64,000 nucleotides of DNA, from positions 62,001-126,000 of the IMG/VR virus record IMGVR_UViG_3300044712_001937. One strand, written 5' to 3'. The stretch's first letter is position 1. The number at the start of each line of letters is the position of its first letter. Shown in pieces: positions 40,345 through 56,667 of this stretch. A model generated the notes under the pieces. That model ran no database searches. It was not told where the DNA came from and saw nothing but the letters and a program-made list of their open reading frames with translations. The position numbers and the translations under genes were made by a program.

Positions 40345-40902
40345 TTATGCACCATTTAACCTATCAACAATAATATCTCCAATGAAAGTATCAAAGAATT
40401 TTTCTTTTAATCTCAAATCCTTTTCATTATTATAAGCTTTAAATTCTATAATATCATTATCTGAACTAAGTAGTTTAACTGTAACATTTTCCCAAGAAAT
40501 ATCATAATTACCAACACTACTGTTGACAGAATTATCAGTATATTGACCTACTTTATTTACAATAATATTATCTTCGCCATTATTTCCAAAATCCAATCCA
40601 ATTAAAATAGGTTCTTTCATTGGGTCATATTTATATTCAAACTTCACATAATAATCTATTGTAATATATACTGAATCGTCAGTATTACCTTCCCAATTTC
40701 CACCTATATTTAATGGTTCTTGCTCAATTATTTTAAATTTTTCCTTAAATTTCCATATCGAATCAATTATTAATTGTTTTTGAAAATCAACATTTTGTAA
40801 TAATTTAATCTCATCTTGTAAATTTATCTCTTTATCATTATTTAAAAAATCAAAACTTGAAAATTCTTCATTTATAATATTTATAATATTTTTATTTTCC
40901 AT
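40345..40902 (-). CDS. Putative internal head protein (IINEE leader)
   Basis: MENKNIINIINEEF; late motif 40920-40928. Confidence 0.5.
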   Translation of the reverse strand: MENKNIINIINEEFSSFDFLNNDKEINLQDEIKLLQNVDFQKQLIIDSIWKFKEKFKIIEQEPLNIGGNWEGNTDDSVYITIDYYVKFEYKYDPMKEPILIGLDFGNNGEDNIIVNKVGQYTDNSVNSSVGNYDISWENVTVKLLSSDNDIIEFKAYNNEKDLRLKEKFFDTFIGDIIVDRLNGA

Positions 40903-40984
40903 CGTATTAGAAATTTTATAATAAATACTGACTCAATAATATAAATCTTGAAACATTTTCTAAATGTTGACGTATTTATAAATG

Positions 40985-41135
40985 AAAAGTCATTGCTTAA
41001 TTATTAATTAAGTTAGGTCTGATAAAAGTCAGGAATGATTTTTAAATTTTATTGCCAGTTAGTGGTTATGTAAAATTTAAAAGACTTGACTATTGATAAT
41101 TGCATCAAAATTTAATTTCGATGCAATTATTTTTT
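40985..41135 (+). ncRNA. Putative small structured RNA with its own promoter and terminator
   Basis: TGAAAC-N16-CGTA at 40949-40974; three-way junction plus long hairpin; terminator ATAATTGCATC...GATGCAATTAT-T run. Confidence 0.55.
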
Positions 41136-41143
41136 AAAATAAA

Positions 41144-41174
41144 TTTGTATTTATAAAAAAAATAATTACATTTG
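41144..41174 (+). promoter_or_regulatory. Bacteroidota sigma-A promoter of tRNA cluster 1
   Basis: TTTG 41144-41147, 19 nt, TACATTTG 41167-41174. Confidence 0.75.
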
Positions 41175-41206
41175 TACCGAATAAGTATAACATAATAAAT
41201 ATTCAA

Positions 41207-41281
41207 ATGAAAAATTTAATACATATCCACCCCCAACCACAACAACATCCACAAATGTTGAATGGGGATAATATGGCTTAA
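41207..41281 (+). CDS. Attenuator leader peptide 1, MKNLIHIHPQPQQHPQMLNGDNMA (His/Pro/Gln-rich)
   Basis: Manual translation; lies between promoter and terminator; contains antiterminator segment TTGAATGGG. Confidence 0.8.
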   Translation: MKNLIHIHPQPQQHPQMLNGDNMA

Positions 41282-41313
41282 ATTTTTTAAAAAAGTTTTT
41301 AAGTTTAACATAT

Positions 41314-41348
41314 AAAAACCCATTCAGAGAAATTTGAATGGGTTTTTT
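41314..41348 (+). terminator. Conditional terminator of attenuator 1
   Basis: AAAAACCCATTCA-GAGAAATT-TGAATGGGTTTTTT. Confidence 0.85.
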
Positions 41349-41375
41349 ATTTTCAGGGATTGGGCGAGTTTAATA

Positions 41376-41386
41376 TGTTCTTTGAA
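41376..41386 (+). promoter_or_regulatory. boxA-like antitermination site
   Basis: TGTTCTTTGAA shortly after the terminator. Confidence 0.55.
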
Positions 41387-41464
41387 TTATCGAAATTGAG
41401 GTTATTTTTTTTATGTTAACTTAATTAATTTCGACATTAATTGTATTTATAATGAAAAATATAT

Positions 41465-42103
41465 ATGAATATTGAAAATTTAAAATTAATAATTGAAAAC
41501 AGTACTTCATTAAGTGAAGTTTGTAAGAAAATGAATATAAATAATAATGGTAACTCATTTAAAAAAATAAAAAAATTTATAAATGATGAAAGTATATCAA
41601 TATCTCATTTTAAGCGAAAATCAAAAAATATTTATAATGTTGATAAATTAAAATTATTAGTAAAAAATTCTACAACATATTCTGAAATATGTAGAGGGTT
41701 TAATATTAAAGAAACTGGTGGAAATATTAAAACAATTAAACAAAAAATTAATGAATCTAATATAGATATATCACATTTTAATGGTAAAGGTTGGAATAAA
41801 GGGAAAAGATATATTAATAATTTTAAAAAAAGTGAATTAAACAAAATATTAGTTGAAAATTCAACATATATTAATACGCATAAACTTAAATTAAGATTAA
41901 TTAAAGAAGGCTTACTTGAGCATAAATGCTATGGAGATAACTGTTGTATTATCAATATGTGGAATAATAAATTAATATCATTACAATTAGACCATATTAA
42001 TGGAAATAGAAGAGATAATAGAATTGAAAATCTTAGATTATTATGTCCTAATTGTCATTCACAAACTGAAACATATGGAGGTAAAAATAACGTAAAAAAA
42101 TAA
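41465..42103 (+). CDS. HNH homing endonuclease inserted ahead of tRNA cluster 1
   Basis: LQLDHINGNRRDNRIENLRLLCPNCHSQTETY; duplicated N-terminal repeat; late motif 41443-41451. Confidence 0.9.
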   Translation: MNIENLKLIIENSTSLSEVCKKMNINNNGNSFKKIKKFINDESISISHFKRKSKNIYNVDKLKLLVKNSTTYSEICRGFNIKETGGNIKTIKQKINESNIDISHFNGKGWNKGKRYINNFKKSELNKILVENSTYINTHKLKLRLIKEGLLEHKCYGDNCCIINMWNNKLISLQLDHINGNRRDNRIENLRLLCPNCHSQTETYGGKNNVKK

Positions 42104-42110
42104 TATATTT

Positions 42111-42185
42111 CTGGGTGTTCCACAGATGGATATATGGGCGTGCCTTGGAAGCACGTGTTCGTGAGTTCGAATCTCACCACTCAGA
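42111..42185 (+). tRNA. tRNA-Pro(UGG)
   Basis: Acceptor CTGGGTG/CACTCAG; CGTGC-CTTGGAA-GCACG; TTCGAAT T-loop. Confidence 0.85.
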
Positions 42186-42200
42186 CTAAATTGTTTTAAT

Positions 42201-42273
42201 GGTGTTTGAAGCATTAAGGTGATGTGCTTGACTGTGAATCAAGAGAAAACGGGTCAGTACCGTTCTTACACCC
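42201..42273 (+). tRNA. tRNA-His(GUG), atypical T-loop
   Basis: CTTGA-CTGTGAA-TCAAG; acceptor has mismatches; T-loop GTCAGTA. Confidence 0.7.
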
Positions 42274-42332
42274 AAATTATCGGTTAATTAACCTATAAAA
42301 TATATTTATAGGCATTTTAAAAGATAAAATTA

Positions 42333-42407
42333 CGGAATGTTGAGGAATTGGTTTCCCTCGCCTACCTTGGACGTAGGAGCATGTCGGTTCGAGTCCGGTC
42401 ATTCCGA
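42333..42407 (+). tRNA. tRNA-Pro(UGG)
   Basis: CGGAATG/CATTCCG; CCTAC-CTTGGAC-GTAGG. Confidence 0.88.
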
Positions 42408-42416
42408 CTATTAAAT

Positions 42417-42492
42417 CGAGTAATTGGGGAGTTGGTCACCCCGCCACATTTGGGATGTGGAGAACTCGCAGGTTCGAATCCTGCTTACTCGA
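42417..42492 (+). tRNA. tRNA-Pro(UGG)
   Basis: CGAGTAA/TTACTCG; CCACA-TTTGGGA-TGTGG. Confidence 0.88.
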
Positions 42493-42494
42493 CT

Positions 42495-42567
42495 GTATTA
42501 GTGGACTGTTGGTAGTCCGTCAAGATTGTGGCTCTTGCTGACGGGGGTTCGATTCCCCTCTAATACC
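42495..42567 (+). tRNA. tRNA-His(GUG)
   Basis: GTATTAG/CTAATAC, C discriminator; CAAGA-TTGTGGC-TCTTG. Confidence 0.85.
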
Positions 42568-42573
42568 CTAAAT

Positions 42574-42657
42574 TGTCCTTTGGTGGAATTGGTTTAAACA
42601 CAACTGTCTTTGAAGCAGTAACCTTCGGGTTTGCAGGTTCGAGTCCTGCAAGGACAA
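42574..42657 (+). tRNA. tRNA with Gln(UUG) anticodon and long variable arm
   Basis: TGTCCTT/AAGGACA; ACTGT-CTTTGAA-GCAGT; variable arm ACC-TTCG-GGT. Confidence 0.85.
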
Positions 42658-42664
42658 CTAAAAT

Positions 42665-42736
42665 TACTCAATAGTGTAATGGCTACCACACAACACTTTG
42701 ACTGTTGTAATTCTGGTTCGAGTCCAGATTGAGTAA
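42665..42736 (+). tRNA. tRNA-Gln(UUG)
   Basis: TACTCAA/TTGAGTA; CAACA-CTTTGAC-TGTTG. Confidence 0.88.
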
Positions 42737-42776
42737 CAATTTAAATAAAATTGCGTATATTACTAAAAAAACAATT

Positions 42777-43198
42777 ATGAATTATAATCTTTTCCTTGAT
42801 GATGTAAGAGAACCTGATGAAGTATTTGGATATACTAATAATCAGCTATATTTAATAGGTTGGAAAATAGTTCGAAATTATGATGAATTCATTAAATGTA
42901 TTTCTGAAAATGGAATTCCTAATGCTATTAGTTTTGACCATGATTTAGGACATGAACATTATAAAATACAAACCAATATTAGCTATAATCAATTTAAAGA
43001 AAAAACTGGTTTTCATTGCGCAAAATGGTTGATTGATTATTGTATTGTATTGATAATAAATTAGAACTTCCAAACACTATTTTAATACATTCATGGAATA
43101 AAGTGGGTAGTGCAAACATTAAGTCGTTATTTGATACATATAATAAAGTAAAAAATATTAACACTCCTAACAATTATCCACCAATACCTTATTCTTAA
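42777..43198 (+). pseudogene. Cyclic-phosphate-processing receiver-like protein, frameshifted by a TATTG x3 tract
   Basis: LFLDDVREP...ISFDHDLG...TGFHCAKWL; removing one TATTG unit (43038-43052) restores IDNKLELPNTILIHSWNKVGSANIKSLF. Confidence 0.7.
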
Positions 43199-43261
43199 GA
43201 ATAGAATAAATTCATATCGGATTTTTATAATATTTATTGTATTTATTATAAATTTCTGATT

Positions 43262-43756
43262 ATGGAATATAAAAATAATAAACAAAAACTTTTTGAAGTT
43301 ATCGCAAGACTTGATAAAACATTCAAACCTAAATTGAATGAAAGTAATGATAAATCAAACAAAAAGGGATTCCATACCAATATTGAAGAAGATACTATTA
43401 ATAATAATAACTTTAGAAAAGTATTATATACTGGTCAAAATTTACAATTAGTTTTAATGGCTTTAAAACCCGGTGAAGAAATTGGTGAAGAAACTCATCC
43501 AAATATTGACCAATTTTTTAGAATTGATGCTGGTAATGGTAAATGTATTATTAATGATAATGAATATAATTTAAAAAATGGTGATTGTATTATAGTTCCC
43601 GCAGGTTCTAAACATAATATAATTAATAATGGTAAGAAAGAATTAAAATTATATACCATATATTCACCTCCACATCATAAAGATGGTATTATCTTTAAAA
43701 CCAAAGACGAAGCTGAAAATAGTAAAGAAAAATTTAATGGTAAAACAACAGAATAA
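43262..43756 (+). CDS. Cupin-domain protein with KQKLFEV leader
   Basis: LKPGEEIGEETHPNIDQFFRIDAG...IVPAGSKHNIIN...LYTIYSPPHH; late motif 43239-43247. Confidence 0.85.
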   Translation: MEYKNNKQKLFEVIARLDKTFKPKLNESNDKSNKKGFHTNIEEDTINNNNFRKVLYTGQNLQLVLMALKPGEEIGEETHPNIDQFFRIDAGNGKCIINDNEYNLKNGDCIIVPAGSKHNIINNGKKELKLYTIYSPPHHKDGIIFKTKDEAENSKEKFNGKTTE

Positions 43757-43784
43757 ATAATATTAAAAATAATAAATTAGCAAT

Positions 43785-44057
43785 ATGAAAGACAGTAAAC
43801 AAAGATTATTTGAAGTAATGGGAAGACTTGATAAAACTTTTAAACCCAAAAATGTTCTTAATGAATGGAATTTCGATAAGAAAAAAGATGATGATTCTGA
43901 AGAAGAAAAAAAAGAAGGTGAAGAAACTCAAGAACATGAAGAATCTGAAACACCTGCTGAAGAAAAAAAAGAACATAAAGAAGATAAAGAATTAGACGAA
44001 GCTGATGAAGTAAAACCTAAAATCCCTGTAAATGCTATTGCAAAGGTGGGTAAATAA
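43785..44057 (+). CDS. Small acidic protein with KQRLFEVMG leader
   Basis: MKDSKQRLFEVMGRLDKTFKPKNVLNE followed by an E/K/D-rich tail. Confidence 0.65.
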   Translation: MKDSKQRLFEVMGRLDKTFKPKNVLNEWNFDKKKDDDSEEEKKEGEETQEHEESETPAEEKKEHKEDKELDEADEVKPKIPVNAIAKVGK

Positions 44058-44085
44058 ATTTTTTTTAAAAAAAAGTTAAAAATAA

Positions 44086-44123
44086 TTTGTTTTTAATTGA
44101 AACTTTTTTACCTTTGTATCGTA
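44086..44123 (+). promoter_or_regulatory. Overlapping sigma-A and ECF-type promoters of tRNA cluster 2
   Basis: TTTG 44086-44089 + TACCTTTG 44109-44116; TGAAAC 44098-44103 + N16 + CGTA 44120-44123. Confidence 0.75.
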
Positions 44124-44159
44124 TTTAGTTTAAAACGCTATAACAATTAAAAAATAGAA

Positions 44160-44252
44160 ATGATGAAAAAAGTACTCGACATATTAGTAGCAGAAACATT
44201 AGTTGCCTTATTATGGGCAGTTGATGAAGATATGCTATGTTCAGTCGGGTAA
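44160..44252 (+). CDS. Attenuator leader peptide 2, MMKKVLDILVAETLVALLWAVDEDMLCSVG (V/L/A/D/E/W-rich)
   Basis: Manual translation; 3' end GTTCAGTCGGGT is a perfect 12-nt complement of the terminator 5' arm. Confidence 0.82.
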   Translation: MMKKVLDILVAETLVALLWAVDEDMLCSVG

Positions 44253-44280
44253 GTTTTATTACGATATAAAACAAGTTTTT

Positions 44281-44318
44281 AAAAAAACCCGACTGAACTA
44301 AAATCAGTCGGGTTTTTT
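44281..44318 (+). terminator. Conditional terminator of attenuator 2
   Basis: A7-CCCGACTGA-ACTAAAA-TCAGTCGGG-T6. Confidence 0.9.
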
Positions 44319-44325
44319 GTTTTTA

Positions 44326-44338
44326 TGTTCTTTGACAT
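44326..44338 (+). promoter_or_regulatory. boxA-like antitermination site
   Basis: TGTTCTTTGACAT between the terminator and the first tRNA. Confidence 0.65.
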
Positions 44339-44349
44339 GCTGGAATTTT

Positions 44350-44422
44350 CGAGGTCGTGGTGTAATGGTCTGCATAACACACTGTCACTGTGTCGGTTGG
44401 GGTTCGAGTCCCCCGGTCTCGG
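44350..44422 (+). tRNA. tRNA-Asp(GUC)
   Basis: CGAGGTC/GGTCTCG; ACACA-CTGTCAC-TGTGT; G discriminator. Confidence 0.85.
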
Positions 44423-44486
44423 CAATATCCTATCGGAAGGTAGGAGAAACTAAATTATTTAAATCCGGAATAGAATAATTTAGAAA

Positions 44487-44561
44487 GGACGTATAGTTTA
44501 TATGGGTGTGAATGCCACCGAGATGGGGTGGTGGTTGCTGGTTCAAATCCAGTTACGTCTG
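44487..44561 (+). tRNA. Atypical tRNA, nominal Ile(GAU), noncanonical anticodon loop
   Basis: GGACGTA/TACGTCT; CCACC-GAGATGG-GGTGG (no U33). Confidence 0.55.
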
Positions 44562-44567
44562 CAAAAT

Positions 44568-44643
44568 ATCACCATAGGGGAGTCTGGTCGTCCCTGCTTG
44601 CCTGTCACGCAAGAGAACACGGGTTCAAATCCCGTTGGTGGTG
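44568..44643 (+). tRNA. tRNA-Asp(GUC)
   Basis: ATCACCA/TGGTGGT; CTTGC-CTGTCAC-GCAAG. Confidence 0.85.
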
Positions 44644-44790
44644 CTAATACTTTACTGTCGAATTATATTAAGTTGATATAATTTATGAAGATAAGCGGAT
44701 TGGTGTAATAAACACATCTACCTTAAATAAGTAGAAACCTGTAACATGTGAAAGTTATCATCCGCAACAAGAAAGTAAAGTATTTATTAT

Positions 44791-44874
44791 CGTGCATTAT
44801 GCAAGCGGTCAAAGCGGCAAGTCCTTCAAACTTGTATCGAAAGATTTCGAGGGGTTCGAATCCCCCATGCATGA
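44791..44874 (+). tRNA. tRNA with Glu(UUC) anticodon and long variable arm
   Basis: CGTGCAT/ATGCATG; CAAGT-CCTTCAA-ACTTG (C33); variable arm ATC-GAAA-GAT. Confidence 0.75.
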
Positions 44875-45141
44875 CTTTAGTTATTTTCATTCAAAAGTGT
44901 AATACAATGCACTTTTGAATGAAAACACAATCATTAGTATCATATATGAGACTTTCAACAATAAATGTTGAATATTTCTATAAAATTTTAAGTTATTGTG
45001 GAAAATATACAACAAATTGAATAAAAGTTATTTATTTTCTACAATATATAATGTATGAAATAACCAACATTAGTAAAACGATGAAATTATATTCTAAACT
45101 AATAACCACTTAGCTTATAAGCATATTTTAAAAATTACGTA

Positions 45142-45426
45142 ATGTGTGAAATAACAAACATTATTTATATGGAAAACGAAATTTTAAAAAAAGAAATCCT
45201 TAAACTCCGGGAAGAAAATGAAGACCTTAAAAGTAAATTAATTGATTTAACTTTTGAACAAAATTATAGCATTGAAAAAGAATTAGCTGAAATTGTTCGA
45301 GAATTATATTCTGGTGTTTGTGAAGAATTAAAAAATAAAAAAAGTGAACTTACTAAAAAACAAATTTTAGAAAATATTAGAAATAATCTACAAGAATTTG
45401 CAAAAAACTATAAGTTTAAATTATAA
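45142..45426 (+). CDS. Hypothetical coiled-coil protein
   Basis: 94-aa ORF; probable start at MENEIL. Confidence 0.55.
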   Translation: MCEITNIIYMENEILKKEILKLREENEDLKSKLIDLTFEQNYSIEKELAEIVRELYSGVCEELKNKKSELTKKQILENIRNNLQEFAKNYKFKL

Positions 45427-45430
45427 AAAT

Positions 45431-45502
45431 GCTCGGTTGGTAAAGTGGCTAATACGTCTGACTTTCTATCAGGAGTCACGGGTTCGATTCCCGTACCGAG
45501 TA
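45431..45502 (+). tRNA. tRNA-Glu(UUC)
   Basis: GCTCGGT/ACCGAGT; TCTGA-CTTTCTA-TCAGG. Confidence 0.85.
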
Positions 45503-45576
45503 CAATTAGGTGTCTAAAGCATTAAAGACTTAAATTCGGTAAAAAGTTAAATAATTAAGCCATGCCTAATTAAATC

Positions 45577-45648
45577 AGTCTCTTAGCGTAGCGGAAGCGC
45601 ATCTGCCTTACATGCAGAGGGTCATAGGTTCGAATCCTATAGGGACTA
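45577..45648 (+). tRNA. tRNA-Val(UAC)
   Basis: AGTCTCT/AGGGACT; TCTGC-CTTACAT-GCAGA. Confidence 0.88.
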
Positions 45649-45766
45649 CAAATGTCTATCATAGCTGGGTAAAATCCCTTAAAGGAATACTGGAGTAACG
45701 ATAACCTAAGTGAAGTGGTATTATGCGAGATAGTTATAATGAAAAGTTGGTCACTCAGTAATTATA

Positions 45767-45841
45767 GGGTGAAAATGGTGTAAGTATGGGAGCACATCTG
45801 CATGAAAGCAGCAGGACGAAGTTCGAATCTTTAACACTCCA
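45767..45841 (+). pseudogene. Degenerate tRNA-like element
   Basis: D-like and TTCGAAT arms present, but 6-nt anticodon loop (ATGAAA) and poor acceptor pairing. Confidence 0.5.
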
Positions 45842-45846
45842 CAAAT

Positions 45847-45931
45847 TGGAAAATGGTGTAATGGCTAAACATCCCACTCTTACAAAGTGGAGACGAGAAG
45901 TATAATCCGAGTTCGAATCTCGGTTTTCCAA
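45847..45931 (+). tRNA. tRNA with Val(UAC) anticodon and long variable region
   Basis: TGGAAAA/TTTTCCA; CCACT-CTTACAA-AGTGG; 16-nt variable region. Confidence 0.8.
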
Positions 45932-45939
45932 CATAAAAT

Positions 45940-46020
45940 GTCCTCTTGGTGGAACGGTAGACACGATAGTTTTAGAAACTATTGCTGAAAGGTGTGAGAG
46001 TTCAAGTCTCTCAGAGGATA
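45940..46020 (+). tRNA. tRNA-Leu(UAG)
   Basis: GTCCTCT/AGAGGAT; ATAGT-TTTAGAA-ACTAT; class II arm. Confidence 0.88.
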
Positions 46021-46066
46021 CTAATATTTTATAATAATTAAAATAAACTTAATTCTTGCAAAAACA

Positions 46067-46732
46067 CTATTTATTTTTTATTATGTTAACAATAACGTTT
46101 AAATATTTTTTTGATGTTTGTTCTTTGAAATATTTTTGTTGTGATGTGTCAATAATGCATAATTCAATCCCTTGTTCTAAACAAGCTTGAAATTTTCTAT
46201 TATCATTATTTTGAATTTGTTGAAGTTTATTTTCGCCAAATATTGGTTCATAATGAAATAAACCATTTAACTCAAAAGCAAGTTTAAGTGAAGGAATATA
46301 AATATCTAATTCAGAATTTATTATATCTTTATTATTAAATAATATTTCTAAATCAGGATATAATAATTTTAATTGTCCTTCAAGATAAATTTCAAGTTTA
46401 GACCTACGATTACCTTTTGTTTTATGTGTATTATTATAAATTGCAGCACATGATTGTGAACAAAAATGATTGTTTGATTTTTTTATTTCACTATTAGGTT
46501 TTATAATTTCAATACCACAATTAATACAAGTAAAAATTGTACTATTATTGAAATATAGTGAACGACATTTTTTTGTACAAAAATTACCACGATTATATTT
46601 ATTTTCTTTTATATAATGTTTTATTCTCTTTTTTTGACATTGGAAAATATTATCACAATAGTGACATTTTAAATTCAAAAAATCATTTGATTTAGCTGTA
46701 TTAAATTCTTCTTTGGTAAATAATGGAATCAT
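46067..46732 (-). CDS. Zinc-finger plus PD-(D/E)XK/Vsr-like endonuclease inserted antisense in tRNA cluster 2 (start revised to MIPLFT)
   Basis: CxxC repeats; ELDIYIPSLKLAFELNGLFHY; late motif on the minus strand at 46755-46747. Confidence 0.75.
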   Translation of the reverse strand: MIPLFTKEEFNTAKSNDFLNLKCHYCDNIFQCQKKRIKHYIKENKYNRGNFCTKKCRSLYFNNSTIFTCINCGIEIIKPNSEIKKSNNHFCSQSCAAIYNNTHKTKGNRRSKLEIYLEGQLKLLYPDLEILFNNKDIINSELDIYIPSLKLAFELNGLFHYEPIFGENKLQQIQNNDNRKFQACLEQGIELCIIDTSQQKYFKEQTSKKYLNVIVNIIKNK

Positions 46733-46820
46733 AAGACTTAATTTATAATAAATACTATAAATTTTCATTTTCGATATAGTTTTTCGGGACAAAGTAAAAG
46801 AATTAATTAATAATATATAT

Positions 46821-46907
46821 GGCTTTGTGGCGAAATTGGCAGTACGCAACAGACTTAAAATCTGTGGTTCAGTAATGGACGTGTCGGTTCAAGTCCGACC
46901 AGAGCTA
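46821..46907 (+). tRNA. tRNA-Leu(UAA)
   Basis: GGCTTTG/CAGAGCT; ACAGA-CTTAAAA-TCTGT. Confidence 0.9.
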
Positions 46908-46975
46908 CGCTATTGAGTTTTACACTTTTAGATTTCCGTGAAGTTAGTTAATAACTGAGAAAGAAAAAGTGATAT

Positions 46976-47051
46976 GGGGTATGGGACTGCTAGGGTTGGT
47001 CATCTCGCTTGCACCGAGAAAATCAGGACGATTCGAATTCGTCATGCTCCA
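46976..47051 (+). tRNA. tRNA-Ala(UGC)
   Basis: GGGGTAT/ATGCTCC with G3:U70; TCTCG-CTTGCAC-CGAGA. Confidence 0.88.
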
Positions 47052-47112
47052 CTGAGACAGACTGTTAGAATTTTATAGAACCTGTTGCTGGGTAGCGTAA
47101 AAATTCGAATAT

Positions 47113-47187
47113 GGTTCTGTAGCCCAATTGGTAGAGGCATCAGATTTAAATTCTGTATAGGTGTGGGTTCGACTCCCACCATCCCTA
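47113..47187 (+). pseudogene. tRNA-like gene, nominal Leu(UAA), mismatched acceptor stem
   Basis: Good D and T arms, CAGA-TTTAAAT-TCTG; GGTTCTG does not pair well with CATCCCT. Confidence 0.55.
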
Positions 47188-47194
47188 CTAACAT

Positions 47195-47265
47195 ACATCT
47201 GTCGTCTAATGGTAAGATATCGGTTTCCAACTCCGAGGATAAGGTTTCGATTACTTTCAGGTGTG
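47195..47265 (+). tRNA. tRNA-Trp(CCA)
   Basis: ACATCTG/CAGGTGT, G discriminator; loop TTCCAAC. Confidence 0.75.
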
Positions 47266-47283
47266 CTAATTAATTATAAATAT

Positions 47284-47550
47284 ATGAGTAGTGAAGATGG
47301 TAGGTATCATATAACTGATATCAAAACAGGTAGAAAATTTTTAGTTGAACCAATTGGTAATCCCCATGTTAATTGGGGTGATGTAAACCCTGCAACAAAA
47401 AAATTAGAAGGGGATTATGGTGATAAATATCGAGGTTCAATCGATGAAAAAAATTCAATAATTACTGAACAAAATGGATTTAAAAATATTATTGTAGGAG
47501 AAATTGGTGAATCTCCAGTAGATTTGATGAATAAAATTTTAAATTCTTAA
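47284..47550 (+). CDS. Conserved phage hypothetical protein (start revised to MSSEDG)
   Basis: The upstream part of the track ORF overlaps tRNAs; ATG at 47284. Confidence 0.65.
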   Translation: MSSEDGRYHITDIKTGRKFLVEPIGNPHVNWGDVNPATKKLEGDYGDKYRGSIDEKNSIITEQNGFKNIIVGEIGESPVDLMNKILNS

Positions 47551-47652
47551 ATTGCCGAATATTACCGGATATTGCCGGAATAAAATAAATTAATACTGAA
47601 TATCAAGTATTTATATTTTTATTTTATTACCGGATATTACCGGAATAAAATA
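47551..47652. repeat. Five 10-bp ATTRCCG(G/A)A(T/A) repeats in two blocks
   Basis: Units at 47551, 47561, 47571, 47626, 47636; each block ends TAAAATA. Confidence 0.8.
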
Positions 47653-47730
47653 TTGCTTATTTTGGGTTGACGATAGTAAGTTCCAAACATTTAGGAATGA
47701 TATGAGGGTTCATTCATAAGCGCATCTAAT

Positions 47731-47813
47731 ACGTCCGTGACCGAGTGGTTAAAGGTGATAGTCTCCAAAACTATTTGCGAAAGCATACGTGGGTTCAAAT
47801 CCTACCGGGCGTG
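47731..47813 (+). tRNA. tRNA with Trp(CCA) anticodon and long variable arm
   Basis: ACGTCCG/CGGGCGT; ATAGT-CTCCAAA-ACTAT; arm TGC-GAAA-GCA. Confidence 0.85.
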
Positions 47814-47875
47814 CTTTAATTTATTAAAAATCAATAACTTATGAAAACGCAAAAAGCAATGAGCACCCTATTAGG

Positions 47876-48335
47876 GTGCAATTAACAAGACAAGAACGAA
47901 GAAGAAATAAACATAGTGATGAATTTAATTTAATTTTCAAAATTTTTTTTTCAATCATATCGTTATAAAATACTTGATTTTTCAGGTGTTGACATTAAAA
48001 CTTTATTATCTTTAAATCATGAAGATTCTAAAGTTTGTTTTAAAAAATTTGATAATGGAGAATATTCGAAGGATGAAATATATTTTCAAGGTATTCCAAC
48101 CAGACATCCAAATATTCTTAAATCAATAATTATATCAAAAAAATCTTGGGGTTTACATGTTAAAATGTGGAGTGATGGTATTTATGAAGGTTGTTTCACT
48201 AAAAAAGAAATTTTAGAACAATTTTATGATAAAAATATTATTATACCTAATAGTTTTTTATTAGATTTAGATAATCAAATTATAAAAAAATTTAAGAATT
48301 ATGGCATCACAAAACAAATTAAAAAAGATGATTAA
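47876..48335 (+). pseudogene. Hypothetical ORF broken at a T9 homopolymer
   Basis: GTG-QLTRQERRR frame joins the QSYRYKILDFSG...KKDD frame if one T is removed at 47943-47951. Confidence 0.45.
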
Positions 48336-48486
48336 TAGTTATTGTTGGAGTAGTTTAAAAAATACTGTACAAGAAATGAAATTAAAACGTGTACTTTTTT
48401 ATACTGCAAATGATAGAAAAATGAATAAAAAGGTAGATTGTAACAACATTGATTAAAATTCGTATTTATAAACAAAACTTATATTT

Positions 48487-48921
48487 ATGAAAAAAACTAT
48501 TTTAAGTATTATTTTATCGTTAATATCTATTCTTGGATATACACAAGAAGTATCAGGTCAATTTACTAAATTGAATGAATCGTATTATCAAAATAATTTC
48601 GCAAATCAGATTAAAGGAAAAACTGAAGTTATTTTAGATGATAAAGCTCGTGTAGATATTGTTACGGATACTTTTGCAATTGAAGTTGATTTTGCTGAAA
48701 AATGGGCAGAATCTATAGGACAATCTCAATATTATGCGAGAAAATTAAATAAAAAAGCTGGTATATTATTAGTTATAAATCCTGCAACTGATGATAAATA
48801 TTTAAAACGTCTAATCATTACTACAATTTATGAAAATGTAACTGTTTGGTTATGGGATTATACAACAGATAAATGGTGTAAAGTTCAAACTAAAATTGAA
48901 TATTCATATAAATTTCAATAA
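48487..48921 (+). CDS. Signal-peptide-bearing PD-(D/E)XK-like protein
   Basis: Signal peptide; ARVDIVTDTFAIEVDFAEKWAESIGQSQYY. Confidence 0.6.
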   Translation: MKKTILSIILSLISILGYTQEVSGQFTKLNESYYQNNFANQIKGKTEVILDDKARVDIVTDTFAIEVDFAEKWAESIGQSQYYARKLNKKAGILLVINPATDDKYLKRLIITTIYENVTVWLWDYTTDKWCKVQTKIEYSYKFQ

Positions 48922-48959
48922 TTCTTGATAATTTCAATTTTAAAATATAAATTTGCCTA

Positions 48960-49697
48960 ATGTTAATATTGACAAGAAAAAAAGATTATTATGATGGTGT
49001 TGCTGGTTCAACTGGCATTGATAAAACCATTGTATATGAACGAGAAGAAAAGGAACTTACAAATAAAGAAGTTCCAATGTTTTTCGTACATGGAAGTCAT
49101 TCTTGGCAAAAAAATAGAGATTCTGCTTTTATTAATTTCAGATATCATAATTTAAAAAAAGAATTTCAGAAAAAATATCCATTAATGAATTATTTTATTA
49201 TTGGATTTTGTGGGAAACTTTATGTGGGTTGGAAACTTTACTATGAAATTCCACAAGGTTTCTCAATTCCTAATAAATTAATTACTGAAATTACATTTGA
49301 TGAAAGTTATATTACATCAATGATTGACGATAAAAGCGGATGGCGTGGTAAGTTTTCAGATAATTTAAATGAGATTAAAAATTACGATGCTTTAGATATA
49401 TTTAGAAAATATCACACTCCAATATTTGTATTTGATTCGGATTACGATGTTACATACATTTCAAATAATGGAAAATATAGAAACATGAATTCCAAATTCT
49501 TCATAAATCCAACTCTAAATAAATATGAATTTTATAAAATATTTGATTCATTTCAAGCATTTCAAGAAATTCAAATGTTTATGAGTGGTGTGTTAGGTTC
49601 TAATGAAAAAAATATTGTTGAAGTTGAAGATAAATACAAGATTACACAATATGGATTTGATAAATGGAGCTTTAGAAAAGAACCAAGTAAAAAATAA
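48960..49697 (+). CDS. Conserved phage hypothetical protein
   Basis: KKDYYD...FYKIFDSFQAFQEIQMFMSGVL...KITQYGFDKWSFRK; TAAATTTG promoter element upstream. Confidence 0.65.
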   Translation: MLILTRKKDYYDGVAGSTGIDKTIVYEREEKELTNKEVPMFFVHGSHSWQKNRDSAFINFRYHNLKKEFQKKYPLMNYFIIGFCGKLYVGWKLYYEIPQGFSIPNKLITEITFDESYITSMIDDKSGWRGKFSDNLNEIKNYDALDIFRKYHTPIFVFDSDYDVTYISNNGKYRNMNSKFFINPTLNKYEFYKIFDSFQAFQEIQMFMSGVLGSNEKNIVEVEDKYKITQYGFDKWSFRKEPSKK

Positions 49698-49700
49698 ATA

Positions 49701-49976
49701 ATGAATATGGAAGTTAAAAAAATATTAATAATACCTGCCAGATTTGTTGAAAAAACTGAAGAAGGTAAATATATTATTGATGTTTTATTACAAAATAAGC
49801 ATAAATCTATAACTGAAAGGAGATTGTTTGATGAATATTCTCTTAAAGGTATTGATAATCCTAATTTATTATTTATTGGTATTTTAACTGGAGTTGGTGT
49901 TATGCAATGTAATTTCATGGATGCTAATGACTATGAAGATTTATTTAAGAAAAAATGGAATGTATTATTAAAATAA
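49701..49976 (+). CDS. Hypothetical protein
   Basis: 91-aa ORF. Confidence 0.55.
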   Translation: MNMEVKKILIIPARFVEKTEEGKYIIDVLLQNKHKSITERRLFDEYSLKGIDNPNLLFIGILTGVGVMQCNFMDANDYEDLFKKKWNVLLK

Positions 49977-49991
49977 GTTCTTTAACATAAT

Positions 49992-50350
49992 GGGGGTGAC
50001 TGGCTTTGATTTCAGGTAGGGCGGTAACGTAAGCAAGTAGTAGTTGAATCGGACTACTCTAAAAAGGTTCAAAACAATAAATGCAGAAGACATTATGTCT
50101 ATTCCAACTTCCTTGACAAAAGGAAAAAGCGTATTCGCACAGAGTGCTGAACTTGCAATAGCAGCTTAAGGAAACAATAAACGGCAAAAGCATGTAAACA
50201 TGTGAGGTTTGAGATACCTTTAAATAATCACTCTGGTTTTTTTGTTTTCCATAATAACTTAATATTTTGTTGATTTAGAAAAATCAAATAAACTTGTAGA
50301 AAGCTTATTAAACACAGGAAAGACGAGGGGTTCGATACCCTCCACCTCCA
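49992..50350 (+). ncRNA. ssrA: tmRNA with tag (A)AEDIMSIPTSLTKGKSVFAQSAELAIAA
   Basis: 5' GGGGGTGACTGG pairs with 3' CACCTCCA; T-arm GGTTCGATACCC; internal ORF 50083-50169 ending LAIAA-stop. Confidence 0.93.
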
Positions 50351-50396
50351 CAAACTTTTTTCTATCTCCATAGTATTTATATGAAAATGTAATACT

Positions 50397-50951
50397 ATGG
50401 GAGATTGGAAAAAAAATAGGAAAACAGTAGCCACAATATGTAAAACGTGTAGTAAAACTTTTGAAAAAATAAAAACTGAATATAATAGAACAGAAAAATT
50501 AGGTAAAAATCATTATTGTAGTAGAAATTGTTGTGGAAAAGACAATATAAAAAAAACTATGGGTGAATGGTTTGGAAATGGTAATACATCTCATTTAAAA
50601 AATATTATAAGAAGTGATGAATTTACTGGATTTAGAGAATTTCTTAGGAGAGCAAGAAATAGAGATAAATTAGGTGATTTAACTTTAGAAGATATTAAAG
50701 AAACGTGGAATAATCAAAATGGTATTTGTCCATATACTGGAATTAAATTAACATTACCTACATATAGTAGAAATAAAAAAAATGTTTTTCAAGAATTAGC
50801 ATCATTGGATAGAATTGATTCTAACAAACCTTATGAAAAAGGAAATATTGTGTTTGTATGTGCATCAATTAATTTAATGAAAAATTCAATGACTGAAGAA
50901 GAAACTATTGCATTTTGTAAAAAAATTGCTTTATTTTGGTATAATAAATAA
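50397..50951 (+). CDS. HNH-like homing endonuclease immediately after tmRNA
   Basis: CPYTG...LASLDRIDSNKPYEKGNIVFVCASINLMK; late motif 50373-50381. Confidence 0.75.
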   Translation: MGDWKKNRKTVATICKTCSKTFEKIKTEYNRTEKLGKNHYCSRNCCGKDNIKKTMGEWFGNGNTSHLKNIIRSDEFTGFREFLRRARNRDKLGDLTLEDIKETWNNQNGICPYTGIKLTLPTYSRNKKNVFQELASLDRIDSNKPYEKGNIVFVCASINLMKNSMTEEETIAFCKKIALFWYNK

Positions 50952-51399
50952 TCAATCGATTATGGATATTGAAAAATTTAAAAAACATTTGGATGAATGG
51001 ATTGAATCTCCAAGTGGTAAAGCTTATATTGAAAAAGAACGAAAGGAATATGAACTAAAAATTCAAAGATATAATAGTTTTACTGATTGGCTTAAAACAA
51101 ATAGTTTTGATAATTTATTGTATCGTTTAATTATTAAACACGATGAAGAATATAGAGCTAAATGTTATGAAAATGGTTATGAACCATATCCAAATCATGT
51201 TTTACAATTTATTATTGATTATGCTTTTACTTTCGGCAAAAAAGTGAATAAAAAAATCATTAAAAAAAATAAACTCGATTCAGATTTTCCATATGATATT
51301 ACAGAATTTGAAGGTTTTTATTTTCAAATTATATATGGACAGGGTAGTATTGTTAGAATTTATAATCGAGATGATACAAGATTATTGTTGCAAATATAA
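50908..51399 (+). CDS. Hypothetical protein
   Basis: ORF in operon; probable start MDIEKF. Confidence 0.55.
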   Translation: MHFVKKLLYFGIINNQSIMDIEKFKKHLDEWIESPSGKAYIEKERKEYELKIQRYNSFTDWLKTNSFDNLLYRLIIKHDEEYRAKCYENGYEPYPNHVLQFIIDYAFTFGKKVNKKIIKKNKLDSDFPYDITEFEGFYFQIIYGQGSIVRIYNRDDTRLLLQI

Positions 51400-51635
51400 T
51401 GTCAAATAAAAAAAGAAATAAAGCTATTCGTGCAAAATACGAATTAGAAAAAGAAAAAAAAGAACATCCTGACTGGTGTTATTGTGATGAACCAGATTAT
51501 GATTTTAATTCTCCAATTGGAAAAACTGAACCAATTGATGGTTTTCCGTATTGGAATTCTGAAAATTATACTCAGGATATTTTTTTATGTAAAAAGTGTT
51601 TAAAAAAACATGTAATAAAAATAGTATTTGCATAA
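51399..51635 (+). CDS. Small Cys-containing protein
   Basis: CYC and CKKC motifs. Confidence 0.5.
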   Translation: MSNKKRNKAIRAKYELEKEKKEHPDWCYCDEPDYDFNSPIGKTEPIDGFPYWNSENYTQDIFLCKKCLKKHVIKIVFA

Positions 51636-51638
51636 TTT

Positions 51639-51724
51639 GGCGAAGTGATGGAACTGGTAGACATGCAGGACTTAAAATCCTGTGGTCAGTAATGACCGTG
51701 TGGGTTCGACTCCCATCTTCGCTA
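51639..51724 (+). tRNA. tRNA-Leu(UAA)
   Basis: GGCGAAG/CTTCGCT; CAGGA-CTTAAAA-TCCTG. Confidence 0.92.
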
Positions 51725-52021
51725 CAAATAAAATTTTAATAGTATTTATGAAAAATAAATTATCTGAACCACCAAAACCTCCTTTATGTAGGATAATAAG
51801 AGAAGGATGTACTCATTTTTGTAATAAATGTCATTCATCGACACCAAGAAGATGGGTTTTGATTGGTAAAAGATATTGTTTAAATCCTGATTGTCAAAAT
51901 TCATATGGCTATAAAGAAAAAGAGTAATAATGATTGTGGATGTGGTAAACCAGTTAAAGTTACTGACTCAAGTAATAAAAAAAGTAATTTTAAAAAAATT
52001 ATACCAAAAAAATGAAAAAAT

Positions 52022-52102
52022 GTTCTCGTGATGGAATGGTAGACTTGGCAGTTTCAAAAATTGTTGCTGAAAAGCGTGTGGGTTCGAGTCCCACCGGGAA
52101 TA
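52022..52102 (+). tRNA. tRNA-Leu(CAA)
   Basis: GTTCTCG/CGGGAAT; loop TTCAAAA; class II arm. Confidence 0.82.
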
Positions 52103-52185
52103 CAAAAATAAAATTTATTATTCTCAGTAAAGAAGAAGTTGAGAATGATAGAAGTAAAGCTTATAAATATTTAATTTAAATTTTT

Positions 52186-52428
52186 ATGAAAATTCACTAT
52201 AATCCATACGTTAATAATGATGAAGAAGATTATCCTGAATTTGCTTTATGTGGAACATTAATGCCTCAAGATGGTGGAAATGAAACTAATGATGAAAAAT
52301 TTGTGACATGTAAAAAATGTTTAAAATCAATAAAAAAAATTAATAATTGGAGAGATGAAACTGAAAAATATATATTAAATGATATGCAAGGTTTCGTTGA
52401 TTTTCAAAATAAAAATAATTTAATATGA
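52186..52428 (+). CDS. Small zinc-binding protein
   Basis: ALCG...VTCKKC. Confidence 0.55.
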   Translation: MKIHYNPYVNNDEEDYPEFALCGTLMPQDGGNETNDEKFVTCKKCLKSIKKINNWRDETEKYILNDMQGFVDFQNKNNLI

Positions 52429-52477
52429 AAAAAATCTTTGAATTCTTGTAGGTACGCTCTAATGCGACCACAAGAAT

Positions 52478-52780
52478 ATGGGTGGATTAAAAGAAATTGT
52501 AAAATCAACCACAAATCGTGGTGAGTTCAATCGTGCATATAAAATGCATTTAGAACATTCCGGAAAAATTCATTGTTCCAGATGTGGTTATCATCGTGGT
52601 GAAAACGAAGATAATAATTATTATGGAGGTTATAAAAAAACTAATGGTCATTGGAGTATAACATACCCAAATTGGAAATTAGTATCTAAACAACCAAAAC
52701 AATGGATGAAAAAACCAATCAATATTGTGTATGAAACAAGACACAATCGTGAATATGTTGAGATTAAATTCTCAACATAA
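52478..52780 (+). CDS. Hypothetical protein
   Basis: 100-aa ORF with CSRC motif. Confidence 0.55.
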   Translation: MGGLKEIVKSTTNRGEFNRAYKMHLEHSGKIHCSRCGYHRGENEDNNYYGGYKKTNGHWSITYPNWKLVSKQPKQWMKKPINIVYETRHNREYVEIKFST

Positions 52781-52784
52781 ACAT

Positions 52785-52855
52785 TGCGATATCGTCTAAT
52801 GGTAGGACACCTCTCTCATAAGGAGTGAATTGCAGTTCGATTCTGCATATCGCAA
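52785..52855 (+). tRNA. tRNA-Met/Ile2(CAU)
   Basis: TGCGATA/TATCGCA; loop CTCATAA. Confidence 0.82.
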
Positions 52856-52879
52856 CAACATTCCAGCATGTTAAAACAA

Positions 52880-52905
52880 AAAAACCCGGATGATACCGGG
52901 TTTTT
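52880..52905. terminator. Bidirectional terminator
   Basis: AAAAACCCGG-ATGATA-CCGGGTTTTT. Confidence 0.85.
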
Positions 52906-53338
52906 AAAATTTAACGTTACATGTTTTTTCTTTAAAATCGAATTCTAATTCGGAGATATATAACGAACTACCTTTAACTAATGTTGGATTAGCAAGTATA
53001 AATTTCCATTCAAAATCATTTATATTTTTTTGTATATTTTCTTGTACAATTTCATCAGTTTGTTTATCTGTATAATTAACATAAAAAATTCCTTCAACTT
53101 TTTCAACATCAACAATAAAATTTTCAATACCCATTTGGTTAAGCCAAAAGCTTACTTTCCAAGTAACATTAATATCACTACCTACAATATCTGAATCATA
53201 TTGAGAAGAGAAACTACTAAAGCCATAAAAATATGAATTTTGTAATTTTTCTGTAAATGTGAATCTATCATCAGTTAAGGCATAACTTTCATTTAGATAA
53301 TTTTGAATTTCTTCTTTAATAATATGTTGTAAACTCAT
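52904..53338 (-). CDS. Putative internal head protein (IIKEE...LNE leader)
   Basis: MSLQHIIKEEIQNYLNES; late motif 53355-53363. Confidence 0.55.
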   Translation of the reverse strand: MSLQHIIKEEIQNYLNESYALTDDRFTFTEKLQNSYFYGFSSFSSQYDSDIVGSDINVTWKVSFWLNQMGIENFIVDVEKVEGIFYVNYTDKQTDEIVQENIQKNINDFEWKFILANPTLVKGSSLYISELEFDFKEKTCNVKF

Positions 53339-53414
53339 TATATTAATTTTTAAATATAAATACTTTGATTATTATTAAAATTAATTTAATATATTTGTCG
53401 ATATTAATAACATT

Positions 53415-54730: not shown

Positions 54731-54788
54731 ATTATGAAAATTTTGGGGTAATTTTACATTACTTGGTATTTATAATAAAATATTGATT

Positions 54789-56608: not shown

Positions 56609-56613
56609 TTGAT

Positions 56614-56642: not shown

Positions 56643-56667
56643 GTATTTATAATAAAACAATATAGAT

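Follow-up and report, generated by a model that had tools for sequence, protein, structure and literature searches.

The 64-kb window (the whole stretch of DNA analysed here, positions 62,001 to 126,000 of IMG/VR record IMGVR_UViG_3300044712_001937) comes from a giant phage of Bacteroidota and carries a 3.5-kb tRNA cluster that is preceded, in order, by a promoter of the Bacteroidota type, a short open reading frame, a terminator and an rrn-type boxA (Table 1). We first examined the content of the cluster. ARAGORN identified Asp x2, Glu x2, Val x2, Leu(tag), Leu(taa), Ala and Trp x2 genes, and Rfam searches added two tRNA-like genes, one with anticodon GAU (Ile-like, with A33) and one with anticodon UAA. 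The cluster therefore has 13 solid genes, and a 14th candidate (about 45776-45840) was detected only at a relaxed ARAGORN threshold.

Table 1. Features of the leader region, the tRNA cluster and the two sister units (window coordinates)
Position	Strand	Feature	Observation
44086-44116	+	Bacteroidota-type promoter, TTTG-N19-TACCTTTG	Conserved in four att2 lineages
44160-44252	+	Leader ORF of 30 codons; regulatory run, codons 5-24	Start conserved across lineages is the second ATG, at 44163 (29 codons)
44172-44180	+	Region 1, GTACTCGAC	Pairs with region 2 in the MFE fold and in the RNAalifold consensus
44197-44226	+	12-bp hairpin inside the leader; possible RNA polymerase pause hairpin (function inferred)	Present in the MFE fold; consensus hairpin with some two-sided changes across lineages
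44239-44250	+	Region 2, 5' strand of the antiterminator, GTTCAGTCGGGT	Overlaps the TAA stop (44250-44252) by one base
44282-44324	+	Intrinsic terminator; 5' arm 44282-44296 containing region 3 (44287-44298, ACCCGACTGAAC), 3' arm 44304-44318, T-run to 44324	-21.8 kcal/mol
44327-44343	+	rrn-type boxA (44327-44338), GTTCTTTGACAT, followed by GCTGG	Conserved after the terminator in relatives
44350-46021	+	First half of the tRNA cluster: Asp, Ile-like (44487-44561), Asp, Glu (long arm), Glu, Val, Val (long arm), Leu(tag)	ORF at 45142-45426 within it
46120-46131	+	Second boxA-like site, one mismatch (function inferred)	Inside the reverse-strand ORF 46067-46849
46821-47814	+	Second half of the tRNA cluster: Leu(taa), Ala, Leu-like UAA (47113-47187), Trp, Trp (long arm)	ORF at 47284-47550 before the last Trp gene
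41144-41388	+	Sister unit 1 (att1): promoter, His/Pro/Gln-rich leader (41207-41281), terminator (41314-41347), boxA-like site (41377)	Precedes Pro x3, His x2 and Gln x2 tRNAs (42111-42737), with an HNH ORF inserted in between
57502-57772	+	Sister unit 3 (att3): promoter, Tyr/Lys-rich leader (57620-57709), terminator (57736-57764)	Precedes Tyr, Lys, Tyr, Lys, Lys tRNAs (57781-58784)

Codon content and pairing potential of the leader

We next asked whether the composition of the leader ORF could be due to chance. Residues 5-24 include 18 of 20 that are Val, Leu, Ala, Asp, Glu or Trp, the six identities of the tRNA genes that follow. The background frequency of this set in the long ORFs of the window is 0.309, giving a binomial P of about 6e-8, and of 405 ATG-started ORFs of 15-50 aa in all six frames, only this one reaches 18, the next best having 15. 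The remaining two codons of the run (ATA Ile and ACA Thr) have no cognate tRNA in the cluster. The earlier note had matched the Ile-like gene to the single Ile of the leader; this match holds at the amino-acid level only, as a GAU anticodon would not read ATA.

Region 2, at the 3' end of the ORF, is a perfect 12-nt complement of region 3 in the 5' arm of the terminator. The duplex scores z = -6.1 against dinucleotide shuffles, with 0 of 300 reaching it, and would be mutually exclusive with the terminator, which is the strongest terminator-like site in 40-60 kb. The pattern TTTG-N18-20-TAnnTTTG has only 7 matches in 64 kb, and 3 of them lie just upstream of the three leaders of the window; in the unit studied here the ORF begins 44-47 nt after the -7 element. 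Most of the factual statements of the earlier note were confirmed by these analyses; however, its proposal of dual promoters was not, since one promoter is well supported but a second rests only on a recurring CGTATTTA motif.

The boxA 17-mer is also found at the rrn spacer boxA position, in the 16S-23S spacer before the 23S gene, in Bacteroidota genomes. A search with GTTCTTTGACATRYTGG gave >= 120 hits. In 5 of 5 loci checked the sequence lies after the spacer tRNAs and 85-200 nt before the 23S gene, and 65 of 122 sites have Ile/Ala tRNAs within 400 nt upstream.

To determine whether a translating ribosome could choose between the two structures, we used a ribosome-footprint folding model in which the transcript ends before the 3' arm of the terminator and the ribosome masks 12 nt beyond the A-site codon. 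In this model the antiterminator is intact for stalls up to Glu23/Asp24 and is gone two codons later. Loss of the antiterminator right after the last cognate codons was seen in 12 of 12 elements modelled (2 att1, 4 att2 and 6 att3 lineages, att2 being the element described here), and again in 10 unrelated modules. At equilibrium, however, the terminator always wins, so the switch must be kinetic, as in the trp attenuator. In addition, the untranslated transcript also forms the antiterminator in the model before the 3' arm emerges, and a default-off state would therefore depend on the folding kinetics of region 1 with region 2.

Conservation in relatives and co-variation with the tRNA array

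Six att2 lineages keep the architecture. Region 1:2 pairing is invariant (8 invariant pairs in the RNAalifold consensus of 4 lineages), one Trp codon is retained in each lineage, and the orthologous leaders differ by in-frame 3-nt indels and by shuffling of residues within the V/A/L/E/D set. The antiterminator core of 8-9 bp is conserved, with one compensatory A-T to T-A change. The relatives are not assembly duplicates of one sequence, as their peptidase identities are 45-78%.

The two sister units have entirely different leader compositions that are again cognate to their own tRNAs; the cross-matrix of the three leaders and three arrays is 0.91/0.90/0.78 on the diagonal and 0 off it. A fourth family has a 49-aa leader rich in Ile, Ser, Thr, Asn, Gly, Phe and Cys, which stands before Cys, Asn, Ile, Ser, Phe, Gly, Met and Thr tRNAs (27/34 codons, P = 3e-5).

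We then examined whether this arrangement is found more widely by scanning IMG/VR for a T-run followed by boxA. Of 114 such sites, 30 precede tRNA arrays, and these carry a leader plus terminator. Leader and array co-vary over 22 leader families from many phages: the summed z of leader versus own array is 46.8, against -0.7 +/- 6.0 for permuted pairings, and 0 of 20,000 permutations reach it. The relationship extends to the codon box, since 26 of 36 informative Leu/Ser/Arg codons fall in the box served by the array's anticodons, against a permuted 51%, and 7 of 5000 permutations reach the observed value. An antiterminator duplex beats shuffles at p <= 0.05 in 25 of 34 elements. The arrangement is not universal, however, because the cultured crAss-like phages crAss001 and IAS virus lack the module before their arrays.

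Discussion

All of the evidence described above is computational, and the phage is uncultured. This evidence supports the proposal of the earlier note that the element is a leader-peptide attenuator tuned to the downstream tRNAs, and we consider it likely that it is a classical four-segment, ribosome-mediated transcription attenuator placed in front of tRNA genes instead of amino-acid biosynthesis genes. In this model, host RNA polymerase starts at the Bacteroidota-type promoter and a ribosome begins translating the leader. When the aminoacyl-tRNAs for Asp, Glu, Val, Leu, Ala and Trp codons are plentiful, the ribosome would run to the end of the ORF and cover segment 2, the terminator would fold, and transcription would stop before the tRNAs. 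When any of these aminoacyl-tRNAs is scarce, the ribosome would stall somewhere in codons 5-24, leaving segment 2 free to pair with segment 3, so that the terminator cannot form and the polymerase reads on to the boxA, which presumably loads Nus factors for passage through the long untranslated, structured tRNA array. With no ribosome at all, segment 1 could sequester segment 2 as an anti-antiterminator, with termination as the default. Stalling at any one class should suffice, and the leader would thus behave as an OR gate, as the earlier note had suggested. If the shortage were of amino acid rather than tRNA, however, making more tRNA would not help. Control of all 13-14 genes by this one leader is an inference, because the cluster is interrupted by three ORFs, one of them on the opposite strand, and contains a second boxA-like site, and internal promoters cannot be excluded.

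Alternative explanations appear less probable. One could envisage that the attenuator is real but reads general translation status or amino-acid starvation rather than tRNA supply, with the codon choice reflecting only the commonest phage codons. The leader codons are indeed mostly the phage's preferred codons, such as TTA, GAA, GAT, GTA/GTT and GCA, and any slowing of the ribosome would give read-through in the footprint model. We nevertheless regard this possibility as unlikely, because the three leaders in one genome use disjoint amino-acid sets that each match only their own array, rare residues such as Trp, His and Cys appear exactly where the array has that tRNA, and codon-box choice for Leu, Ser and Arg follows the array's anticodons. 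It is still less likely that the ORF encodes a functional hydrophobic micropeptide ahead of an ordinary, leaky terminator to which its end is only incidentally complementary. Residues 5-21 would form a plausible hydrophobic helix, and the N-terminal MKKVLDIL and the LLW motif are conserved, but the N-terminal block is conserved at the nucleotide level and pairs with segment 2, the middle of the peptide is shuffled rather than conserved, and the sister leaders are hydrophilic. Furthermore, complementarity to the terminator arm recurs in other elements, and a promoter followed within about 200 nt by a strong terminator makes little sense without regulated read-through.

An RNA-only switch of the T-box or riboswitch kind, in which uncharged tRNA or a metabolite is bound directly and the ORF is irrelevant, is also very doubtful. 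T-box leaders likewise use an antiterminator/terminator choice and sense tRNA, but no Rfam family of the T-box or any leader type (including the His, Leu, Thr and Trp leaders) matched positions 40500-59500 even at E <= 1, the element is short (about 165 nt from ATG to T-run), its reading frame is preserved by in-frame indels, and its composition is matched to the array in frame at the amino-acid and codon level. Finally, although AT-rich genomes contain many small ORFs and promoter-like sites, the sequence statistics reject a chance combination of a terminator for the upstream gene, a promoter and a spurious ORF; the promoter lies upstream of the leader, so the terminator does not serve the upstream gene, and the arrangement is conserved in six lineages and co-varies with the array globally.

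The multivalent attenuators of the enterobacterial ilvGMEDA, ilvBN and thr operons also mix codons for several amino acids in a short leader ORF, and stalling on any of the sensed codons relieves termination through alternative hairpins. They control biosynthetic enzymes and sense 2-3 amino acids, whereas the element described here is phage-encoded, would control tRNA genes and sample six classes (up to about 18 in related modules such as L279 and L187), is driven by a Bacteroidota promoter and is followed by boxA. With the trp and his attenuators it shares the 1:2, 2:3 and 3:4 segment logic, a stop codon next to segment 2, and a terminator more stable than the antiterminator, but its codon run is heterogeneous rather than tandem and identical, and the regulated product is the RNA component of the sensed molecule itself, which would give direct feedback on tRNA supply. 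The regulated genes of leader-peptide attenuators are usually amino-acid biosynthesis or aaRS genes; that they are tRNAs in this case is the novel point and does not conflict with a mechanistic requirement. T-box riboswitches serve the same biological purpose, reading the state of a specific tRNA to adjust genes of the translation supply chain, but bind uncharged tRNA directly without a ribosome, occur mainly in Firmicutes, and regulate aaRS, biosynthesis and transporter genes. The boxA is identical to that of Bacteroidota 16S-23S spacers and is likewise placed ahead of long untranslated structured RNA genes, but it sits in a phage tRNA unit directly after a regulated terminator, and no boxB or boxC has been defined. 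In crAss001 and IAS virus, arrays of many tRNA genes also lie behind a TTTG/TAnnTTTG promoter, but the promoter abuts the first tRNA, and there is no leader ORF, terminator or boxA.

We found no published report of an attenuator wired in this way. The element would constitute a demand-driven feedback loop, in which shortage of a given charged tRNA turns on the phage genes for that tRNA, and their product turns the switch off again. Leader-peptide attenuators acting as codon samplers are probably a general, previously undescribed way for phages of Bacteroidota to run their tRNA arrays on demand, each array being preceded by a promoter, a short ORF spelled in the codons that the array decodes (from 2 up to about 18 amino-acid classes), a terminator with a competing antiterminator, and a host rrn-type boxA. 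The ribosome itself would report which charged tRNAs are running short, whether through codon-usage mismatch or through host tRNA depletion or cleavage as a defence, and the phage would answer by transcribing exactly those tRNAs, with negative feedback.

Features of the element and its surroundings

The window lies at positions 62001-126000 of IMGVR_UViG_3300044712_001937, a 364.7-kb uncultured phage contig. Its GC content is 26.8%. It carries a major head protein, portal and terminase, and it has no close relative among GenBank phages. The window holds 26 ARAGORN tRNA/tmRNA genes, plus several tRNA-like genes that are detected only by Rfam or with relaxed settings. The coordinates of the features described below are collected in the table.

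Positions of the features of the three leader units and of neighboring loci
Position	Strand	Feature
40971, 44120, 57513	+	CGTATTTA motif
41144		Promoter pattern upstream of leader 1
41207-41281		Leader of unit 1 (att1)
41314-41347		Terminator of unit 1
41377		Two-mismatch boxA copy following att1
41465-42103; 46067-46849	second ORF on the reverse strand	Endonuclease-like ORFs inserted in the tRNA units
42574-42658, 44791-44875, 45847-45932, 47731-47814, 58697-58784; L004 9484-12600; L062 4582-4666		tRNAs with a long variable arm
42777-43064 and 55559-56608		RNA-repair-type genes (cREC_REC domain; T4 Rnl1-like RNA ligase)
43262-43340 and 43785-43865; L005 1235-1930	L005: reverse	Unrelated proteins sharing an N-terminal stretch
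44086		Promoter pattern upstream of leader 2
44160-44252		Leader ORF of unit 2 (att2)
44163		Second ATG, the conserved start in relatives
44172-44180		Segment 1 (GTACTCGAC, codons Val-Leu-Asp)
44197-44226		12-bp hairpin, inferred pause site
44239-44250		Segment 2
44282-44318		Terminator of unit 2
44287-44298		Complement of segment 2
44327		boxA (GTTCTTTGACAT)
44487-44561		tRNA-like gene, anticodon GAU
45142-45426		ORF within the cluster
46120		One-mismatch boxA copy, mid-cluster
47113-47187		tRNA-like gene, anticodon UAA
47284-47550		ORF within the cluster
47551-47655		Two copies of a repeat of about 25 nt
49977-50351		Phage tmRNA, with a one-mismatch boxA copy at 49977
56668-57474		Papain-family peptidase, just before att3
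57502		Promoter pattern upstream of leader 3
57620-57709		Leader of unit 3 (att3)
57736-57764		Terminator of unit 3

We first examined whether the features described in an earlier note, made from the sequence alone, could be confirmed. The leader ORF translates as stated there, although in relatives the conserved start is the second ATG. Codons 5-24 are 18/20 Val, Leu, Ala, Asp, Glu or Trp, a set that makes up 30.9% of residues in the window's long ORFs, so the binomial P is 6e-8. Among 405 ATG-started ORFs of 15-50 aa in six frames, no other ORF reaches 18, and the next best has 15. The 12-mer of segment 2 is the exact complement of a sequence in the terminator region and shares one base with the TAA stop codon, and its duplex energy is 6.1 sd better than that of dinucleotide shuffles of the leader. 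The terminator, followed by T6-G-T5, is the best terminator-like site between 40 and 60 kb.

Downstream of the terminator, ARAGORN finds Asp x2, Glu x2, Val x2, Leu(tag), Leu(taa), Ala and Trp x2. Rfam adds two tRNA-like genes. One (41.5 bits) has the anticodon loop GAGAUGG, which gives GAU (Ile-like), with A33 instead of the universal U33; a ?-anticodon tRNA-like gene sits at the same place, after the first Asp, in two relatives, L064 (where ARAGORN makes the same two-base "ga" call) and L286. The other has the anticodon UAA, a short variable arm and three mismatches in the acceptor stem, and may be a decaying or non-standard Leu-type tRNA. The note had counted 14 tRNA genes, but a 14th gene is doubtful. 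tRNAs with a long variable arm (84-88 nt, a class-II-like body) carry Gln, Glu, Val, Trp and Lys anticodons, and each stands beside a normal-length tRNA with the same anticodon. Relatives have long-arm Cys, Asn, Ile, Gly, Met and Glu. This body plan is unusual for these identities. Between the ORF at 47284-47550 and the last tRNA-Trp lie the two repeat copies (TTACCGGATATT.CCGGAATAAAAT).

Three leader units in the window

The same logic occurs three times in the window. The leader of unit 1 contains the run HIHPQPQQHPQ and carries a copy of the 3' arm of the terminator that follows it, and the unit precedes Pro x3, His x2 and Gln x2. An HNH ORF lies between the att1 terminator and the first tRNA-Pro, whereas in the orthologue L052 the tRNA follows the terminator by 16 nt. 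The leader of unit 3 contains the run YYYGKKSYK and is followed by a terminator, and the unit precedes Tyr, Lys, Tyr, Lys, Lys. The enrichments give P = 8e-11 and P = 3e-5 for units 1 and 3, respectively, and the 3 x 3 matrix of leader run against tRNA set is 0.91/0.90/0.78 on the diagonal and zero elsewhere. The Bacteroidota promoter pattern TTTG-N18-20-TAnnTTTG occurs only seven times in the 64 kb, and three of those sites are immediately upstream of the three leaders. Each unit is therefore a self-contained promoter-leader-terminator cassette. The note had proposed dual promoters, the second of which is unconfirmed; the motif CGTATTTA recurs next to the promoters of all three attenuators and is conserved in their orthologues, and it may be a second promoter element or a factor-binding site.

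Modelled position of the ribosome and antiterminator formation

We next carried out folding analyses in which the ribosome was represented as a mask. Equilibrium folding always gave the terminator, as in the trp attenuator, and thus could not discriminate; a co-transcriptional model was used in its place. When the transcript was ended just before the 3' arm of the terminator and the ribosome's footprint was masked to 12 nt past the A-site codon, the att2 antiterminator was intact for every stall position up to Glu23, was partly lost at Asp24, and was gone by the next codons. The loss coincides with the last cognate codons in all 12 elements modelled (2 lineages of att1, 4 of att2 and 6 of att3). 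Without a ribosome, the full-length fold pairs segment 1 with GUCGGGUA in segment 2, giving the classical 1:2 + 3:4 state, although the co-transcriptional model without a ribosome still forms the 2:3 pairing. The 12-bp hairpin within the leader could serve as a pause site, a role that is inferred.

Relatives of the element

Megablast of 40-60 kb and blastn of the attenuator against GenBank phages found no relative, and the hits were only tRNA, HNH or low-complexity matches. Relatives of the upstream cupin gene (L036-L041) carry no tRNAs, the 626-aa ORF upstream found only itself, and the 88-aa ORF inside the cluster gave one useful relative, which lacked upstream sequence. Orthologues were reached instead by walking from a relative, L005, and by DNA pattern scans, which gave six lineages of att2: the window, L046/L058, L052-type, L061/L064, L286 and L290. 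Unrelated proteins (a cupin, a 90-aa acidic protein and, in L005, a 231-aa protein) share a very similar N-terminal stretch of about 25 residues (..K.KLFEV..RLDKTFKPK..), which may be a common targeting or assembly tag.

All six lineages have the promoter, the leader, an 8-9-bp conserved antiterminator core, the terminator, boxA and the six tRNA classes. The first eight codons, which constitute segment 1, are conserved at the nucleotide level, whereas the middle of the leader differs by in-frame 3-nt indels and by reshuffling of Val, Ala, Leu, Glu and Asp. Every lineage keeps exactly one Trp codon. Because indels in the terminator region made column-wise counting of pairs unreliable, pairs were counted per sequence; one antiterminator pair changes A-T to T-A, and a terminator pair changes A-T to T-A in the L052 lineage. 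This is the pattern expected for selection on RNA pairing plus codon content, not on a peptide.

Covariation of leader and tRNA array

We then asked whether leader composition follows the downstream array beyond this family. In L004, a 49-codon leader rich in Ile, Ser, Thr, Asn, Gly, Phe and Cys precedes Cys, Asn, Ile x2, Ser x3, Phe x2, Gly, Met x2 and Thr. Of 34 regulatory codons, 27 are in the set (P = 3e-5), and the unit has its own antiterminator, terminator and boxA. Among the T-run plus boxA sites found in IMG/VR, 30 have a tRNA array starting 11-250 nt downstream, and these carry a small ORF plus terminator upstream. A strict terminator search missed imperfect stems and one family (L204, L253, L304), and these were checked by eye and by refolding. 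Of the modules so identified, L288 has the stretch LPETYHNDQPEDNKPL before Thr, Tyr, Glu, His, Asp, Asn, Gln, Pro and Leu; L256 has LPLHSTLLSSSRRP before Ser, Thr, Ser, Leu, Arg, His, Pro, Met and Leu; and L279 has 27 consecutive in-set residues before a 20-tRNA array.

Over 22 leader families, the summed z-score of each leader against its own array is 46.8, while permuted pairings give -0.7 +/- 6.0 with a maximum of 23.8, and 0 of 20,000 permutations reach the observed value. At the codon level, 26 of 36 informative Leu/Ser/Arg codons lie in the codon box served by the array's anticodons; permutations average 51%, and 7 of 5000 reach the observed fraction. This argues that tRNA species are being matched, not just amino acids. 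An upstream segment complementary to the terminator's 5' arm beats shuffles at p <= 0.05 in 25 of 34 elements, and at p <= 0.01 in 12.

boxA and the host

The boxA sequence follows the att2 terminator. Of the two one-mismatch copies, one lies in the middle of the cluster and the other three bases before the phage tmRNA (tag ending in ...AELAIAA), and a two-mismatch copy follows att1. The 17-mer GTTCTTTGACATRYTGG has at least 120 matches in species-representative genomes, and about 67 of the 80 listed are Bacteroidota, including Pedobacter, Mucilaginibacter, Chitinophaga, Niabella and Bacteroidales. In five of five loci checked with Rfam, the 17-mer lies after the spacer tRNAs and 85-200 nt before the 23S gene, and 65 of 122 sites have Ile/Ala tRNAs just upstream. 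The note's assignment of a boxA downstream of the leader is therefore right and, together with the promoter type, it points to a Bacteroidota host and to host RNA polymerase. Only two bacterial-genome sites precede tRNAs. One of them is in L107, a 5864-bp contig of a MAG labelled Anaerolinea sp., which carries an att2-type terminator, boxA and three tRNA-Asp genes and is probably a phage contig mis-binned into a bacterial MAG. In L074, an Algoriphagus MAG, a host-type boxA lies inside a bacterial tRNA operon (Arg - boxA - Leu, Pro, Met), so boxA before tRNAs is not exclusive to phages.

Discussion

Although no measurement exists, the most likely mechanism is ribosome-mediated attenuation that couples transcription of the phage tRNA genes to the supply of the matching aminoacyl-tRNAs. 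It would act as an OR gate over six classes with negative feedback, followed by boxA-dependent processive antitermination through the array. Two codons of the run (ATA and ACA) lack a cognate tRNA in the cluster, and the Ile-like tRNA (GAU), which the note had matched to the leader's single Ile, would not read ATA. The cluster contains three ORFs, one of them a zinc-finger ORF on the opposite strand. No + strand terminator was found inside the cluster, and the second boxA suggests one long transcript, but internal promoters are not excluded. The context fits a tRNA-supply or tRNA-repair theme, in that a cyclic-phosphate-processing receiver-domain protein, a T4 Rnl1-like RNA ligase and a phage tmRNA lie among the arrays. 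The physiological trigger, either codon mismatch or host tRNA loss during infection, is inferred.

Mechanistically, the element most likely is a leader-peptide attenuator, and it conforms to the structural criteria for which a clear answer was obtained. It is closest to the multivalent ilv and thr attenuators, and it differs in its target (tRNA genes), its owner (a phage), its breadth (six classes here, about 18 in relatives) and its coupling to boxA. No Rfam leader or T-box model matches. Cultured crAss-like phages, which we examined as a possible experimental system, lack the module before their arrays. Literature searches found no report of leader-peptide attenuation of tRNA genes, although the literature searched was incomplete for older subscription journals and the result is thus absence of evidence; a search of papers for boxA as a sequence word was uninformative.

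The element gives a sequence signature for annotating such units in metagenomic phage genomes and a natural design for synthetic sensors of individual tRNA pools. It would also extend classical attenuation to non-coding RNA products, to leaders that sample many amino acids at once, and to a combination with boxA antitermination. Why phages carry tRNAs, and how they control them, has been debated for decades, the main ideas being codon compensation, replacement of degraded host tRNAs, and evasion of anticodon nucleases. A switch that reads the ribosome's waiting time at the codons served by the array would show that the phage measures tRNA shortage directly and responds class by class, which would make the "supply on demand" idea testable with simple reporters.
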